NCBI GenBank assembly: GCA_004764695.1 | Contig: SMSO01000014.1 | Location: forward strand, 181,648-245,647 | Source: Schizochytrium sp. TIO01 | Taxonomy: Eukaryota > Protista > Bigyra: Labyrinthulomycetes | Length of the DNA stretch: 64,000 bases | Reading direction: 5' to 3' | Shown: positions 3 through 22,649 of the stretch, piece by piece | Position numbering within the stretch: the first letter of the stretch is position 1 | Layout of the letters: the number at the start of each line of letters is the position of its first letter | Position numbers and translations under genes: made by a program | Notes under the pieces: generated by a model | Seen by the model: the letters and a program-made list of their open reading frames with translations, nothing else | Told to the model about the DNA's origin: nothing | The model's database searches: none

Positions 3-2385
3 GCGGCTCTCATGATTCAAAGCTGTTTTCGCGCCAAACAAAGCCGCAACAAAATTCAGAATATCATCAAGACACATCTTCGTAAGATAACTGATCAGAC
101 AACCGGCCAAACATATTATTTCAACAAACTTACACAGGAAACTACTTGGGTTAAACCTAAGCTTATGCAAGACCTTTCAGTCAAAAGCTTCGCTTCTGAG
201 GATACTAAATCACCTCGCAAAAAGAGAAAACCGCGCGTTTTTGCCACACAAGACGAAGCTGCAGCAACACTTCCAGGCCATGTACCGCCGTAAAAAGGCT
301 CGAGATCGTATTAGGCACTTGCTTCAAGCTCGTTTTGAAAAATACATCGATCCAGAGTCTGGGCTCACATACTACCTTAACACTGTCACGCAGGAAACCA
401 CCTGGGAAGCCCCTGCACTCTTGGACGAAGCATCCATTCTCACGCCCAAAAGTCGCGAGCGCAAGGCACTTGTGGAGGCCAAAAAGGCCCGAGGAGAGTT
501 CCGCATGGCCATTGATCTTACTGAGGAAGATGCTGCGCGCATGGTACAGCGTAACTATCGTGCTAACCGGGCACGTGCGCGTGTCCGAGATATTTTACTT
601 AAAGTCATTGCAAAAGCATCCGATGAAAATGGCAATGTATACTATGTCAATGTGCAAACAATGGAGGCAACTTATGAAAAACCAGCACTGTTAAGGCGAC
701 TCACAGATTCAAAGCTAGGTTCATATAACACACTACTCCTTCATAATCAAGATCGCAAAAAGAGAACACCGCGCGTTTTTGCCTCACAAGACGAAGCTGC
801 AGCAACACTCCAGGCTATGTACCGCCGTAAAAAGGCTCGAGATCGTATTAGGCACTTGCTTCAAGCTCGTTTTGAAAAATACATCGATCCAGAGTCTGGG
901 CTCACATACTACCTTAACACTGTCACGCAGGAAACCACCTGGGAAGCCCCTGCACTCTTGGACGAAGCATCCATTCTCACGCCCAAAAGTCGCGAGCGCA
1001 AGGCACTTGTGGAGGCCAAAAAGGCCCGAGGAGAGTTCCGCATGGCCATTGATCTTACTGAGGAAGATGCTGCGCGCATGGTACAGCGTAACTATCGTGC
1101 TAACCGGGCACGTGCGCGTGTCCGAGATATTTTACTTAAAGTCATTGCAAAAGCATCCGATGAAAATGGCAATGTATACTATGTCAATGTGCAAACAATG
1201 GAGGCAACTTATGAAAAACCAGCACTGTTAAGGCGACTCACAGATTCAAAACTGGGTTCTTATAGAACTCTCGTGCAACAATCTATTAAGGCACAGGATG
1301 AAAACCCAAGTAGAGGTAAACCTTCTCGAAAATATGGTTCACAAGATGAAGCTGCATCAGCTTTACAAGGAATGTATCGACGTAAGAAAGCTCGTGATCG
1401 CATTCGTGCGCTTCTGCAGGCCCGCTTTGAAAAACACTATGACCCTTCGTCAGGGGCTGCATATTTCCTGAACACGGCAACCGGAGAGACTTCTTGGGAT
1501 GCGCCAACTTTATTAAATGAAGATAGCGTTCTTACACCTAAAAGTCGAGAACGCAAAGCTAAGTTGGAGGCTAAAAAGGATAGAGGAGAGTTTCGGACAG
1601 CCAAAGACCTTTCAGACGAGGACGCTGCACGCATGGTTCAAAGGGTGTTCCGTGCTAACCGCGCTCGCGAACGCGTGCGCACTCTTTTAACGCAGCTTAT
1701 TGTCCGTGCACGGGATGCTGACGGTTATCTTTACTACATAAATATGCAAACAATGGAGGCTTCTTATCAGAAACCGATCTTGCTGCGTAAACTCTCAGAC
1801 TCCAAACTTGGATCCTATCGAACGATCATGCAACAACAAGATACTCAACAGACTCCTCAGCATGCGCGAAAATACCAGAGTGAAGAGGAAGCTGCTTCTG
1901 CTTTGCAAGCCATGTATCGCCGTAAACAAGCCCGGGATCGAGTGCGAGCACTGCTTCTTCTTTATCTCGAAAAGGCTGTTGACCAAGATGGACATGAGTA
2001 TTACTTTAATACTCTTACAAATACTAGCTCCTGGTACAAGCCTCAGGTACTGAAAGGTTTCGAGGTCCTTACGCCTCGGCAGCGCCATCAGCGGCTTTTA
2101 GCTCAGCAGAAACGTGATGCTGGTTTGTTCAAGGACGCCAGCACCATGACACGAGATGAGGCTGCTATTTTCATCCAAAAATGGTTTCGTGGTGTATCAG
2201 CGAAATCAAAGCTGCGAAACATTCTTATCAATACCATTATTAAAGCGCGGGACGAGCATGGTAATCTATACTTTATCAATCAAGCCACAGGAGAGGCTTC
2301 ATGGGAAAAACCAACACTCTTGCGTGATCTCAGTGACTCCAAACTTGCCTCCTTCAAGGAGAATGATGAACACTACTATGAATAA
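3..2385 (+). CDS. IQ-motif/WW-domain tandem repeat protein; 5'-partial, with a +1 frameshift at about 271-274 joining ORFs 12..293 and 241..2385
   Basis: Nine IQ-like motifs (IQSCFRAKQSR, LQAMYRRKKAR, VQRNYRANRAR, IQKWFRGVSAK and others) alternate with nine WW-like motifs (YYFNKLTQETTWVKP, YYLNTVTQETTWEAP, YFINQATGEASWEKP and others). The frame is open to the left edge. The first repeat copy reads acacttccaggcc where the second copy reads acactccaggct, i.e. one extra base. Confidence 0.85.
215..1250 (+). repeat. Near-identical intragenic tandem duplication, 537-bp period (179 aa); copies about 215-713 and 753-1250
   Basis: The copies match nearly base for base, e.g. cgagatcgtattaggcac at 301 and 838. 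More diverged third and fourth units follow. Confidence 0.95.
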
Positions 2386-2945
2386 TAAAACAAATGATGT
2401 CTTCTTTTCTCCTCCCAACATTCTTCAAGTAAAAGATCCTTGATTTAAAAGTTTGATACATAGCTACAGAGTGAATTATTGATGCATTAGCACCTTTGGA
2501 TATAATCAAAGACTCGCAATACATATGTTCTTAAAGACCGTTCTTCACTGGCAAGATCTCTTGTTCCTGTACATATGAATTGACGAAATTTACAAGCCCA
2601 ATTTGATTCTTGTGCTAGAGTGTAGAACTCATAACCCTGATGAAAATTTGGAATGAGCTAAAAATGGCACACTGCTTCCCGTATCTCACATAAAACATTT
2701 GTCCCTCTTCCACGAAAAATTAAACAAATACAGACACTTAGTTATTTCTTAGCCAAATCTGATTGTTTATTTCTGATAAAAACAAAAGGAAAATTCTGGC
2801 TCAGAGATTCGCGTGATGGACACGTATGTGCTTAACTTCAAATAAACTAAAACAATGAGACTCGTTCTTCACGTCTACATGGGACATGCTCCTAAAAACA
2901 AGCAAAATGTAGCTATTCGTAGGGTTCATTAAGCTCGAATGAAAT

Positions 2946-4496
2946 TCACAGGCTTTTCAGATGCTTTTGTACTATATCTGTGAGATCACGCCACCGATCA
3001 TTCAAAACATTACTAGTGTCATAGAGGACATAGCGATGACCAGCTACGTGGGATAACACTGTATACTCCGTTTGTTGCTCATCCCAGCCAAGTTCTACGA
3101 CTAGTCCTCCTGGTTGCATAAACAGGGCATTTGAAAGGCCCGCTCCGTGGATGCCAATGACAGCATCGGCGCGACGGAAAAGACGCACCTGGCAAGCAAT
3201 ACATTGCATGAGAGCTTCGTCATCATCACTTACCCGAATGACTTTTTGTGGGTAATCTGCAGGAACAGCTTGTTGAACAGCTTTAAAAACATCATCATAT
3301 CGAGAAGGCTTATCCAGCCATGTCCGTAGGCCCTGCCGACGCTCGATAACAATAATGACGGGATCTGTAGCGCCAGGACTATCATCTTCAGTACTCTCTG
3401 CATCGTTCGTTACAAGACTACTAGTCTCTTCTGAGACATCCCACATCACCTCACGAGTTGCCCATAATGGCTTATATTGCAAAGAAGACATCCCGCAGGC
3501 GGTCCACAACGGTGCCCATACAGTTTTAGCTAGAATATCACCACGCACTAAGCGTGTTGGAGAGATGCCAAGGAGCCGAAAATACTCCTCTATAAATGGC
3601 GCAGGTGGGGCATCATGAAGCGTTTTAATATGAATCTTGATGCTAGGCGTGTTTACCAATTTATCCAAAAATGGAACTATGCGTGGCAAAATTTCCTTGA
3701 CAAAGTGTGCATAACCGTAACCGAATACCTGCGCTATTGAAAACACTTCGTCAGCTGATTCCACAAAACCTGAACAATCCTCACTCTTCGTCACACATGC
3801 ACATGCCTTTTCTAAATTTCGAAAATTGAGTTGTGCCTCACAGTAGCAACAATCTTTACCTTGCAATAAGGCCCCGGAGCTTAAAAGAATGGCACCTTCG
3901 TGTTGAATCACGGCACCATCGGCGATGTGCAGAACTAACCAATCATAGTCATGCGAGGGTTTGGCAAGGGAAAAACTCGCGCGCGAACTCTCTTTTTTCC
4001 AAGCATCTTGTTGTTTTTGTGCTTTCGACTCGCCAGGCATTGTTACAAGCTCTGACACAGTAGCTTTGCAAAGACAGTCAAAATCGGTCACATTTCCATA
4101 TCGCTTGTGCCAGTCTCGGGCCTCACCGTTGCGACAGAGAAACTCTGCAAGTTGTGGCTGGAAAAATGTCTCTACGTCCCTGTGTTTCCTTGATGAATAT
4201 GGCGGCGAATATACACTAACGCCAAGCCTTGCAAGGTCGTCAGCCATATCAAGTGGATTGGTTGTGATGCGTAAAATATTTGCCGGACATGACATTTTGA
4301 CTCCCCAACTCTGATTCAAAGACAGTGCTTCACGGAGCACCAACCAATCCTCTAATTCGTAGTTATCATCCTCAGTATCTACGATGGATTCTACTCTAGA
4401 GATACTAAGCAACATCTCTAAAGCTATACGCAAGAGTCCAATCAAGCCCAAGACCATCATGAGCCAACGCACAGCCGATGTGAGACATCTTGCCAT
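2946..4496 (-). CDS. Glycosyltransferase family 61 (DUF563; EOGT/xylan arabinosyltransferase-like), type II membrane protein
   Basis: N-terminal hydrophobic anchor, GYAHFVKEILPRI motif, and the C-terminal GT61 signature QVRLFRRADAVIGIHGAGLSNALFMQPGGLVVEL. Confidence 0.88.
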   Translation of the reverse strand: MARCLTSAVRWLMMVLGLIGLLRIALEMLLSISRVESIVDTEDDNYELEDWLVLREALSLNQSWGVKMSCPANILRITTNPLDMADDLARLGVSVYSPPYSSRKHRDVETFFQPQLAEFLCRNGEARDWHKRYGNVTDFDCLCKATVSELVTMPGESKAQKQQDAWKKESSRASFSLAKPSHDYDWLVLHIADGAVIQHEGAILLSSGALLQGKDCCYCEAQLNFRNLEKACACVTKSEDCSGFVESADEVFSIAQVFGYGYAHFVKEILPRIVPFLDKLVNTPSIKIHIKTLHDAPPAPFIEEYFRLLGISPTRLVRGDILAKTVWAPLWTACGMSSLQYKPLWATREVMWDVSEETSSLVTNDAESTEDDSPGATDPVIIVIERRQGLRTWLDKPSRYDDVFKAVQQAVPADYPQKVIRVSDDDEALMQCIACQVRLFRRADAVIGIHGAGLSNALFMQPGGLVVELGWDEQQTEYTVLSHVAGHRYVLYDTSNVLNDRWRDLTDIVQKHLKSL

Positions 4497-17043: not shown

Positions 17044-17288
17044 TAATTCTCCATTCTATTTATTTAAAGCCATATCGTGTTTTTTCATTTTCTCCTCCAT
17101 CTTTGTGTGCCGAGAAATTCTCCCTTCATGTCTCCGTCCGATACACACACACTTTCAGATACTACTCTTTCGCGTTACATGCGCTCGCTGCATATATTAA
17201 TAAAGAAGACGACACTTGCGATTTGTGTTAGTCTCCGCTTATGAAAATGACAAGCAAACTGAGAATAATGCAGTTAACCTAATGCACG

Positions 17289-17408
17289 CGTTCCAAACAC
17301 TTCGAACATAACCTATAAAATCTGCTAAACTTGCATTGCCTAAGATGTCGTGGGGCTAATAAGGTCCAATCGCGGGTTAAAAACTAACCCACTCATCAAA
17401 GACAATTT
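17289..17408 (-). ncRNA. Putative (decayed) omega-RNA scaffold / element right end
   Basis: Lies immediately 3' of the Fanzor stop. Minus-strand hairpins are gtgggtta-gtttt-taacccgc (17392-17372) and gttcgaa-gtgt-ttggaac (17307-17290). TnpB/Fanzor omega-RNAs are known to derive from the element right end. Confidence 0.45.
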
Positions 17409-17740
17409 TTAAATCGTGTCCTTGGATAGACAACGCAAGTAGACGCCTCTGGCGGCGTGGATATCACAAACGGCTACGTGCTTGTGTATTTTTGAAAACC
17501 TTGGATTGTCTTGGATGGTATCACATTCATTGCATGGTTTGAAAGTGCAATCCTCTTATCAAATGGTCAGTTTACACCACTGGCAGGGAAAAAGCTCGGT
17601 TTTGTGAATGAGCGCTTACTAGAAACCAACGAGCAACACATTATTCGAGCTGTCTTGATTTTGATTTGTCTTGCTAGCTTGTTGAGGCTTCAAATTTAGG
17701 CAAAATCGTCGTTTTCACAAAACCAAAGTGCAAAATCTCG
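17409..17740 (-). pseudogene. tnpB: Fanzor2/TnpB RNA-guided nuclease pseudogene, C-terminal fragment
   Basis: Manual translation gives FALWFCEN (17734-17711), ILPKFEAS (17706-17683), RQIKIKTARIM (17671-17639) and ALIHKTELFPCQWCKLTI**EDCTFKPCNECDTIQDNPRFSKIHKHVAVCDIHAARGVYLRCLSKDTI* (17615-17409). These match the Fanzor2 pattern WLCENY..ILLPxFE..RKIxSKTARxM..RLxHK..PWCxVxIxxExYTSKTCxxC..RDxNAARNIxLR. Confidence 0.88.
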
Positions 17741-18089
17741 GTAGTCTAGTAGAGCGTCCAAGCCCGGCCTGTTGAAGTTGACCCCTCTATCGATGTCTTT
17801 GTAGGCGGCGGAGGCGTCTGGATGTCACCAATATGGCATTCGGAACTCTTTTTTTTTTGCTTGGTGGAGGGTACTCTGATGTAGATAATGGAAAGGTCCG
17901 TACTGCATTGCTTGTAGCTGTCGAACCGTAACCATGGATGAACTCAAGATCGTCACTTGCGTATATGCGCTTGCCTCCGGAGAAGCGCCCGAAAGCACTT
18001 GCTGAGATGCCAAACTTCTGGTTAAAGTGCTTTGATGATTTGAATTGAAGGTTTGTGTTTAGAGCTTGGTAGATCCTTGGCCATGCCAT
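17741..18089 (-). pseudogene. tnpA: IS607 TnpA serine recombinase pseudogene fragment
   Basis: FKSSKHFNQKFGISASA...GGKRIYASDDL (18044-17946) matches the HTH/wing. IIYIRVPSTKQK (17889-17854) corresponds to IIYARVSSxKQK, with the catalytic Ser position now Pro. HPDASAAYKDIDRGVNFNRPGLDALLDY (17824-17741) corresponds to DIGSGLNFxRxGLxxLLD. The motifs are separated by frameshifts. Confidence 0.88.
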
Positions 18090-18325
18090 TTTCTTACCTA
18101 GCCTCATTTCTGTTCTTTTAGAAAAACAAACAGAGACCTAAATAATTATACATCATTTATATGAATAGTCACTATCATTTGGAGGTTATATAAGTTCTAA
18201 TATTTTCATCGATTTTGTTCTTTATGTTCTTTTTCAAGTTTGGATCAAGAAGTCAAAGCAAAGCAACGCAAGCAAACTCTTACGTTCACAGCCTGCGGAT
18301 CTGTCAAGGTCTCCAGCGCCAAGCG

Positions 18326-20139: not shown

Positions 20140-22649
20140 TCATTCTGCTGATGCATTATTGTTTTGCTTTTGAGATTGTTGCGGCTGCTGTGTCATGTTG
20201 CGAAGTAAGGGTGATTGTAAGAACATGGCAATTGACTCTGGAGAAATCTGCTGATCACCTCCTTGCTGCTGTCTAGAAAAGGCAGAATGCTGCTGTTGTA
20301 GTGGTAATTGGTTGGCAAAGCTACTGCTTCGGGAGTGCTGTTGCTGCTGCATCATGGCGGCAAGCAAAGCCTCACGGTCAGAGTTTCCACCTTGCCGTTG
20401 CCACATATTCGGTGTCTGTCCAAGGCGTGCGGCCAGTGCTGCTGCATGAAGGGCAGCGGCTTGCTGGTCGCCACCTGAGGCCAGGAATGAGTTTGACCTT
20501 CCGCCCTGTGCAGAAGAGGCAGCGGCAAGCTCCGATAAAAAGTCCATACGCTGAGGTGCAATGGAAGAACTACTGTTATTACTCGGCTCACTGCTTGCCC
20601 TGTAAGACGAAAGGTTTGACGAACGCATTCCGGCATATGTTTGTGGGAAGTTCATACCAGAATTCATTCCTGATGCGGCCGCAGCGGCTGATGCCATTGC
20701 TGCTGTTTCACGGGGCATTCCTTGGAGACTAGCCATCTCTTGCTGAAAGTTGCGCAACCAACTAGACGGGTTATTATTGAGGTTGCCAACTCCAAGAGAA
20801 GAACCGTCACGACCAGAACTGCTGTTTCCCACAGATGAAAATGCTGATCCTAATCCTACAGATTGTTGTTGTTGTTGCTGCTGCTGTTGCTGTTGAAGAG
20901 AAGGCAAGAATGGCATCCCACTTGAGCCTCCCATGGCAGCTTTTGCATTAAGAGCCTGAAGGTACGGTGATGCAGACGGGGCCGATGAGGATGAGGCCAC
21001 TGAAGAAGTATTAGCTTCCATTTGGCGCTGCATCTCAAGCAAGAGGTTAGGTAGGTTGCCATTTTGAGCAAAAGCAGAAAGTGCTGCAGGATTGTTGCAG
21101 AGAGAAGCAGCAAGGCGTGCTTCGAGGCTCTGCGTGGACAAGTTCGGCGATGAGTGAAGGTGCGACATGTCATGTGCACTGGTTGTAGCGCCTGGAGAAG
21201 ATGCACCGGAAAGGCTCGGAGAACCGCTGGCAGCAGCAGCTGCTGCAGCAGCTGCAGGTGTGGGAGCTCCGGGTTGTTTCCATGCAGAAGTAAGACGGAA
21301 GCTAGGTGAGTTTGCATGCGCGACGCACATCATAGATTTGCGGGAGATAATATATATCGTAAAGACGTGCTCCTGTCGCATGGTGTGCTTGGCGAGCTTA
21401 CAGAGGTAACGCCAACGACGCTCTGCAATAAATTCAACTAGCCAGCGGCCTGTAGTACTATCGTAGGACTTCCATTCTCCGCGAAACATTTTGTTTTGGC
21501 TCGTGGGGTCATCCTTGTATATTGTCGAGACCGGCCGACCTGCTTCGTAAACTAGAGGGGCGCTCACCTTACGAATACCAGCATGAAGTTCAAGCCCGAG
21601 TTCATCAACAAGGGACTTGGGATTCATGAAGATATGTGCACAAACTGATTGACCACAAAAGCCGTTCTCCATATGACGAGCGAGACATGCTGGAAAGCAT
21701 CGTAGGTTCTTGTGACGCGTACGAACGTAGGAAGGTTTCCATGCGTCGGCGTTACAGAAGTGGATCTGGAACGAAGATCCTGGTGCGGTGCCAGGGGCAG
21801 CGTTGTTATGGTGATTGAGAGAGGACGCGGACGTGATGGCGAGGTCGCTATCATCTTCTTCATCATCGTTTTCTTCGCTGCTTTTGCTGGACGTTCTACT
21901 TGCACGAGAGTTGAGATTTGCGGAGGAAGAAGCTTGGGACGACTCGGCACGGAGTTTCTTGAGGGTGCGCGAGGCATCTTCAGGACCAAGACCAGGCGAC
22001 TCACGCTTGATGCTTGGGTTGCCGGATCCTGCGGCACTTCCCATTCCTTGAAGCCCTTCTAACGGGTTTCGGGATTGCAGTAGGAGCGGGTTTTGCTGAA
22101 AGTTCATCATGTCCAAAGCAAACTTGTTGGTCCCGCTTGAAAGGGATTGCAAACGTTATTGTTGATGTTGTTGCTTGCTGTAGAACTGAACGGCGGCGGC
22201 GGTGGCGGCTGGCCCATGGCGTTATAAAGGTCGCCAGAGTTGGTACCAGGATTATTGCCGCTGTTTGGCAAGTTTGTAAGACCACTACTTTTAATACTGG
22301 CTGCTTTGGACTCGTTGTTGGTTGATGAAGAGGACGCGGTGGAGGGCGTAGGCAATGCGACTCCCTTCGCCATGTTTACTACCCCTTCCCTCCCACTGGC
22401 GACGGCAAGAAGTTGATCAATGACGTTGTTTTCGAACCCTTGCTGGCGCAAAAGTCGGCGGTAATAGTCTCGACTGATTTCCTGGTTATTCCTTGGCAGC
22501 TCTTCGTCGTTATTTCTGTTGTTGTTATTGTTATTGTTGCCCAAGCTGCTGCTACTATTTCTGCTGCCCCCCTGATTCAATTCCTCCTTTATAGAACAGC
22601 GTTGAGCATGCTTGGTGTCATTGTCAGGGTCCCGACCTTCACTCGGCAT
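20140..22649 (-). CDS. Putative transcription factor: a central ~165-aa Cys/His-containing beta-rich domain flanked by N/Q/S/A-rich low-complexity regions; split at about 22154 by a 1-nt indel or short intron
   Basis: ORFs 22107..22649 and 20140..22152 overlap in different frames and share the same composition. There is a bipartite NLS-like KR-x12-KKLR, SUMO-like IKEE and IKRE, a globular domain at 21771-21277, and polyQ/polyA/polyN tracts. Confidence 0.7.

Follow-up and report, generated by a model that had tools for sequence, protein, structure and literature searches.

Fanzor2 proteins are eukaryotic relatives of TnpB and are RNA-guided in the members that have been characterised. IS607 transposons carrying Fanzor2 are established in eukaryotes and in giant viruses (PMC3627910, PMC3673617, PMC10530073, PMC10711439). 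Named examples are ISvMimi of Acanthamoeba polyphaga mimivirus, which encodes ApmFz2 (L79), and ACa-1 and ACa-2 of Acanthamoeba castellanii (Bao & Jurka 2013, PMC3627910). The catalytic triad of ApmFz2 consists of D324, E467 and D501, the RuvC-II glutamate being rearranged in Fanzor2 (PMC11832414). In characterised Fanzor2 and TnpB systems, the guide-RNA scaffold is encoded at the 3' region of the element (PMC10530073, PMC11832414). An early survey could not formally establish transposition of the eukaryotic IS607 elements (PMC3673617). The literature search found no paper that pairs Fanzor with thraustochytrids, and the Aurantiochytrium limacinum genome preprint is silent on transposons.

The window (the whole 64-kb stretch of DNA analysed here) contains at positions 17298-18218, on the minus strand, a dead element that is very probably one copy of a non-autonomous family, derived by internal deletion from an IS607-type DNA transposon that carried Fanzor2. 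By itself the copy is nothing remarkable: elements of this kind have been described since 2013, and this one is long dead, has no function and is useful mainly for what it points to. Following it up revealed a genome where transposition of an IS607-Fanzor2 lineage has clearly gone on for a long time, as seen from an old burst of derivatives and from young, near-identical intact copies. The likely host is a thraustochytrid that can be cultured, probably Aurantiochytrium judging from the layout of its rDNA and from a 91%-identical MMETSP transcript, and could serve to ask what use Fanzor2 is to its transposon in a native cell.

The intact copies were located by genome scans with PF00239 (Resolvase) and PF07282 (Cas12f1-like TNB): at about 20 loci, a resolvase frame of about 240 codons was followed, about 1.1 kb downstream on the same strand, by a TNB match within an open frame of 661-665 codons. 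The full-length unit measures 2,204 bp (L043:2256-4459). About 23 full-length copies of 2.2 kb, 81-100% identical, end at the same bases, and many of the roughly 20 young ones have both reading frames open. The original prediction had held that intact copies may exist elsewhere in the genome, and this is confirmed: the intact ones encode TnpA and Fanzor2. The intact TnpA (L043:2370-3068) is a 232-aa serine recombinase (PF00239 at 5e-20), and TnpA homologues elsewhere combine MerR or HTH_17 domains (PF00376, PF13411 or PF12728) with Resolvase PF00239. The Fanzor frame (L043:2410-4350) lies downstream of the TnpA start on the same strand and contains PF12323 (2e-9), PF01385 and PF07282 (2.6e-13). 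The intact unit has the IS607 architecture with Fanzor2, a helix-turn-helix (HTH) serine recombinase TnpA followed by a tnpB-type gene on the same strand; gene order, strand and the three nuclease domains are those of the eukaryotic and giant-virus IS607-Fanzor2 elements. A serine-recombinase TnpA with an N-terminal HTH is also shared with the bacterial IS607 of Helicobacter pylori (Kersulyte et al. 2000, via PMC3627910 and PMC3673617).

The best solved relative of the intact Fanzor was 9b0l, annotated as 'TnpB-like protein L79', which is the mimivirus Fanzor2 ApmFz2 (3.7e-19); Cas12m and TnpB-like chains came next, at 1e-7 or weaker. On these matches the intact nuclease is predicted to be a Fanzor2, nearest to ApmFz2 among the PDB matches, although the kinship between the family's protein and ApmFz2 is distant. 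Outside the genome, the nearest protein was a 601-aa ORF from an MMETSP transcript (91% identical). Long copies that are 95-99% identical occupy unrelated sites, which is consistent with the predicted transposition by TnpA.

The Fanzor2 frame was also seen to stay open, in a second frame, across about 660 nt of the tnpA ORF (L043:2370-3068 and 2410-4350; L068:2344-3144 and 2483-4210; L069:2416-2952 and 2291-4168). This overlap recurs in two giant-virus contigs, and the N-terminal extension of Fanzor (…C.PFW…WS.KLWSCT…SW(F/Y)T…) was conserved in relatives just 35-48% identical. [quoted passage not shown] A subfamily (L049, L050, L052, L054 and L062) carries an extra insertion of about 295 bp in the 5' leader, at element position 196/197.

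The proteins of the intact element were matched to the window by tblastn. TnpA residues 1-134 matched positions 18089 to 17744 in three successive frames (E 8e-21), and Fanzor residues 523-646 matched 17743 to 17412, starting at the base directly after the TnpA part (E 4e-16); in a search of the whole 64-kb window, colinear matches of the two proteins were confined to this site. The likeness goes far beyond what chance would give. Non-self profiles, built solely from homologues 35-61% identical to the intact proteins, were run on 3,138 stop-free segments of the window. Over these segments, the top three TnpA profile matches were the three TnpA pieces of this site, in the profile order 5-33, 60-80 and 97-118 (E 0.054, 0.07 and 3.5e-5), and the top Fanzor profile match was 17412-17555, at positions 504-554 of 563 (E 0.017). 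The window copy keeps the TnpA-then-Fanzor order of the intact L043 unit. The original prediction had read the site as an IS607 fossil with an HTH-serine recombinase TnpA and Fanzor2; this reading held, the intact same-genome proteins and the profiles both matching the reconstructed pieces in colinear order. Seven isolated stop-free pieces gave no usable match to Pfam or NCBIfam (one zinc-finger match was sub-threshold), because the pieces are too short and too decayed, and the whole-genome Pfam scans (PF00239, PF07282) did not pick up the window copy. The predicted assignment of the window copy to IS607-Fanzor2 is supported, and therefore rests on transitive homology together with profile matches that are weak but colinear.

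The extent of the element was set by comparison of 20 fetched copies of a repeat unit of about 0.9 kb, which begin and end alike at the same places with unrelated sequence on either side; in the window, likeness stops at 17298 and 18218 (left end ±5). The interval first proposed, 17289-18107, was in the right place and too small. The ends of this decayed copy are colinear with L043:2256-4459. All of the minus-strand peptides previously listed were recovered, in the same order, by three-frame translation of 17200-18260: KFGISASAFGRFSGGKRIY, IIYIRVPSTKQK, KDIDRGVNFNRPGLDALLD, WFCEN, ILPKFE, RQIKIKTARIM, LIHKTELFPCQWCKLTI, EDCTFKPCNEC and CDIHAARGVYLR.

Read along the minus strand, the copy begins with the left end and a 5' non-coding leader (18108-18218), which align to the family left end ACTGTACCTATGAAAACGTTAGAAC... 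and to the left end of the intact element. The remnant of TnpA residues 1-72, with the MerR-like HTH region, occupies 17919-18089 (50% identity by tblastn; profile positions 5-33), followed in a second frame by residues 75-111 at 17800-17913 (tblastn; profile positions 60-80) and in a third frame by residues 108-134 at 17744-17824, which read YKDIDRGVNFNRPGLDALLD (70% identity; profile positions 97-118). The junction of a 1,194-bp internal deletion lies at 17743-17744 and has an identical sequence in all short copies examined. Beyond it, at 17636-17743, are Fanzor2 residues 523-564 (ALWFCEN, ILPKFE, RQIKIKTARIM), interrupted by stops and locally by a frameshift (tblastn; a weak match to Fanzor profile positions 461-477), and at 17412-17627 are residues 570-646, with four in-frame stops (51% identity by tblastn; profile positions 504-554). 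The 3' non-coding tail and the right end, ...CGAAGTG, fill 17298-17411 and align with the intact right end, ...ATCTAAGAG; the tail includes a hairpin at 17372-17392.

The damage to the window copy amounts to at least four frameshifts and at least six in-frame stops. The catalytic YARVSS reads YIRVPS, with the nucleophile Ser changed to Pro (17869-17871), and the HTH remnant is without 11 residues (WADGGRVRCAR). In the Fanzor part, the second Cys pair of the zinc ribbon is deleted and the first CxxC is kept at 17523-17534. The copy is dead and has no open TnpA or Fanzor2 frame.

The catalytic residues were placed by a HMMER alignment of the intact copy with ApmFz2, in which D324 aligned with the D of ALDPGVRSF, E467 with the E of CQESYTSKTC and D501 with the second D of DRD. 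The catalytic Glu is therefore at the same rearranged position as in ApmFz2 (PMC11832414). The E of LPKFE aligned with N419 and not with E467, so the earlier proposal that the E of ILPKFE is the RuvC-II catalytic residue was wrong; the companion proposal, that the D of CDIHAARG (17463-17465) is the RuvC-III catalytic Asp, agrees with the D501 alignment. The rearranged RuvC-II Glu survives in the window at 17553-17555, before the zinc ribbon and right after two stops, as the first residue of EDCTFKPC. The Glu and the last Asp are the catalytic residues left in the window copy, and the RuvC-I Asp falls within the deleted part.

The 1-kb stretch of the window that holds the element has at least 55 matches in its own 64-Mb genome, at 68-76% identity. 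The copy number of the short family is a lower bound, 40 of 235 first-look candidates having been scored. All 20 short copies examined align to the intact element up to about position 516 and pick up again at about 1711, with positions 517-1710 missing, an interval of 1,194 bp (3 x 398). The junction, ...CTACTGGAC joined to TACCGAGATT..., is repeated across all short copies examined and can also be read, copy after copy, as ...CTACTGGAC joined to TACCGAGATTCACCGC.... It connects TnpA residue ~134 to Fanzor residue ~520 and takes out TnpA residues ~135-232 (the C-terminal half) and Fanzor residues ~121-519 (WED, REC and RuvC-I parts, including the RuvC-I Asp of ALDPGVRSF). What the deletion left in place is the two transposon ends, ~400 bp from the start of tnpA, ~380 bp from the end of the Fanzor gene, and the 3' tail. 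The window copy thus differs from the eukaryotic and giant-virus IS607-Fanzor2 elements in its length of 0.9 kb, in the absence of the TnpA C-terminal half and of Fanzor ~121-519, and in being heavily mutated. Since the same junction and the same missing interval occur in 20 dispersed copies, a single deletion preceded the spread of the family and the insertion at this site; the short family is a non-autonomous derivative and not a set of full-length insertions that decayed locally.

Several sister copies show clearer motifs than the window copy (IIYARVSSAKQK, YKDIGRGANFNRPGLRALLD and CNECGTIHDKLG...KCKHVADRDIHAARGILLRYL). Every short copy among the 20 fetched loci is full of stops; as none has an open frame, no product is claimed. 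A chimeric TnpA::Fanzor fusion protein was considered and rejected: although the length of the deletion is divisible by three, translation in the TnpA frame would halt at a stop ~14 codons beyond the junction, and all copies are broken.

The short copies are 69-82% identical to one another pairwise, with a mean of 75%. A tree was made from the shared end segments of 17 short copies, L021, L022 and 22 long copies. L021 and L022, found as 'left half only' matches and first suspected to be intact long copies, proved to be old, broken full-length copies; with the 17 short copies they make up a single star-like group whose tips measure 0.10-0.18, that of the window copy being 0.13 (about 13% change on its own branch). 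A branch of 0.13 parts this old group from the 22 long copies, the youngest set of which has tips of 0-0.012. In this tree the short copies are not separated from the old long copies into a clade of their own. The old group, L021 and L022 included, has in common the loss of 33 nt from the HTH (WADGGRVRCAR), which has no counterpart in the young lineage or in outside homologues. This 11-residue loss in an old lineage that includes two full-length copies was counted against our best explanation, as it bears on the source of TnpA. Taken together, the copies suggest one long-lived lineage in this genome, in which defective derivatives multiplied in an ancient burst and an autonomous line has survived, with recent activity.

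Two other histories would also leave a shortened copy at this site. A full-length IS607-Fanzor2 element might have inserted here first and had its middle deleted on the spot afterwards. Full-length copies of comparable age do exist (L021, L022), but the identical junction and missing interval in all 20 dispersed copies examined make such a local loss extremely improbable. The short copies might instead have arisen repeatedly and independently from full-length insertions, through a microhomology deletion hotspot, and in favour of this are the 2 nt of microhomology (AC) at the break points and the failure of the tree to separate short copies from old long ones. However, 2 nt is too little to direct at least 20 identical events, the short copies are several-fold more numerous than the old long copies, and the young lineage has no such derivative among the loci seen; we consider recurrent deletion very unlikely, if marginally less so than a local loss. 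The spread of a single, already deleted derivative is the reading retained here.

The surroundings of the element bear on two further proposals. The element sits between a 689-aa ORF and a UBX-domain gene (PF00789, 4.8e-12); of the F-box and UBX neighbours named in the original prediction, the UBX gene was confirmed, whereas the upstream 689-aa ORF had no F-box or other Pfam match. The stretch might be what is left of a large DNA virus, a giant virus or mirusvirus, that had integrated while carrying an IS607 element, given that related TnpA-Fanzor2 pairs occur in giant-virus contigs, one of them beside a capsid-like gene, and that mirusvirus-like elements are reported for the likely host. An alignment-based scan of IMG/VR returned 238 relatives, many in giant-virus bins, and a scan of viral contigs with a single protein as query found none. 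The viral relatives are, however, at most 34% identical (against 48-91% for relatives from non-viral metagenomes and MMETSP), the repeat unit has sharp limits at 17298 and 18218, with a host gene on either side and no viral ones adjoining, and the family is scattered over many contigs as discrete units of 0.9 kb and 2.2 kb. A viral remnant is accordingly highly improbable; the giant-virus relatives are consistent with the known enrichment of Fanzor2 there and say nothing specific about how this lineage arrived. The suggestion in the original prediction that a large DNA virus may have delivered the family is neither supported nor contradicted. It is also conceivable that the remnant was co-opted, either as the 106-aa ORF at 17787-18107, which does start with ATG, or as part of the promoter of the UBX gene, the left end lying ~60-75 bp upstream of the starts of UBX transcript contigs. 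Against this, the 106-aa ORF consists of the decayed HTH region continued by a tail that is out of frame, the sister copies are just as broken, and there is little sign of expression at the locus: RNA-like run X17 had no locus contig over 17107-17400 or 18117-18217, its neighbouring transcripts placing the end of the upstream gene at ~17087 and the beginning of the UBX gene at ~18279, and run X15 gave contigs of trace depth only, short high-depth pieces deriving from other family members. The window copy is silent or nearly so, and co-option has as little to recommend it as a local deletion of a full-length element.

The preferred and very probable explanation, an inherited deletion followed by spread, runs as follows. 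One ancestral deletion of 1,194 bp fused TnpA codon ~134 to Fanzor codon ~520, removing all that either enzyme needs. The short element then spread to dozens of dispersed sites, presumably in trans, with the TnpA of full-length elements acting on the retained ends, as the pattern of copies suggests; afterwards the copies decayed neutrally. Such a derivative resembles MITE-like non-autonomous DNA transposon families in that the ends are kept, the internal coding sequence is lost by one deletion common to all copies, and the derivative is more numerous than its autonomous relatives. It differs from them in having a serine recombinase as transposase, hence no TIRs or TSDs, and in being large (0.9 kb) and retaining the 3' region in which the guide-RNA scaffold is expected. 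We put forward tentatively, as a suggestion with the odds against it, that no MITE-like derivative of a serine-recombinase (IS607) transposon, mobilised in trans, had been described from a eukaryotic nuclear genome before the 0.9-kb family. Because the in-frame deletion spared the two ends as well as all of the presumed omega-RNA region, the short element, while active, may have parasitised the TnpA and Fanzor2 of full-length elements as a guide-only passenger or decoy.

The ends of the element were compared between young and old copies. Young copies end ...ATCTAAGAG (...CTAAGAG), and most have a flanking CA ahead of GTATGAC; with AG closing the right end and CAG often preceding the left end, AG is a candidate crossover core. 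A CAG-like motif 5' of the left end is also a candidate TAM (L043-L066, 24 long copies). The first 5-7 nt of the left end differ among subfamilies (GTATGAC, GTATAAC, TAGGGTC, AAGAAAC ...). Like the eukaryotic and giant-virus IS607-Fanzor2 elements, the family is without TSDs and without long TIRs: no TSD was found beside the 24 long and 20 short copies compared, long copy L048 excepted, and no TIR was found in the young element, the old family having a short imperfect subterminal one only. In L048 (G000:C33:4613500-4616300), the 11 nt that open the left end (AAGAAACAAAT) recur directly after the right end, a TSD-like repeat that is not usual in elements with a serine recombinase. An imperfect inverted repeat of 15/19 spans both ends of the window copy (17304-17322 and 18211-18229), the inner ~10 nt of which are family-wide. 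This 19-nt repeat was rejected as a true TIR, as it reaches into the flank and its inner part alone is shared by the family.

The 3' 260 nt fold better than shuffled sequences in both the window copy (z -2.6) and the intact copy (z -3.0). A hairpin occupies the same place, just past the Fanzor stop codon, in old and young copies (window 17372-17392 and L043:4371-4397). By analogy with characterised systems, the 3' tail of the element is the presumed omega-RNA scaffold region. The stem sequences of the hairpin differ between the window (GUGGGUUA/UAACCCGC) and L043 (CGCGGGCUAGU/ACUAGCUCGUG), and the hairpin may belong to the guide-RNA scaffold or serve as a TnpA site.

Contigs from DNA runs of other organisms or strains span the gene-to-element junctions at ~99.7% identity; the insertion is therefore not private to the assembly. 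Every DNA run compared carries the copy, so that no empty site was seen among them. A 670-aa ORF at 20140-22152 (minus strand), rich in poly-Q, poly-A and Ser runs, adjoins the UBX gene. On a wider scale, SSU rRNA genes, with 125 first-look candidates, are found close to contig ends, on the minus strand at the starts (C5, C7, C35, C4 and C12) and on the plus strand towards the ends (C5, C13 and C24), and an inverted pair lies inside C33:1964464-1993456. This pattern fits subtelomeric rDNA at every chromosome end, some contigs possibly being chromosomes joined end to end, and divergent rDNA near contig ends fits the published chromosome architecture of Aurantiochytrium limacinum.
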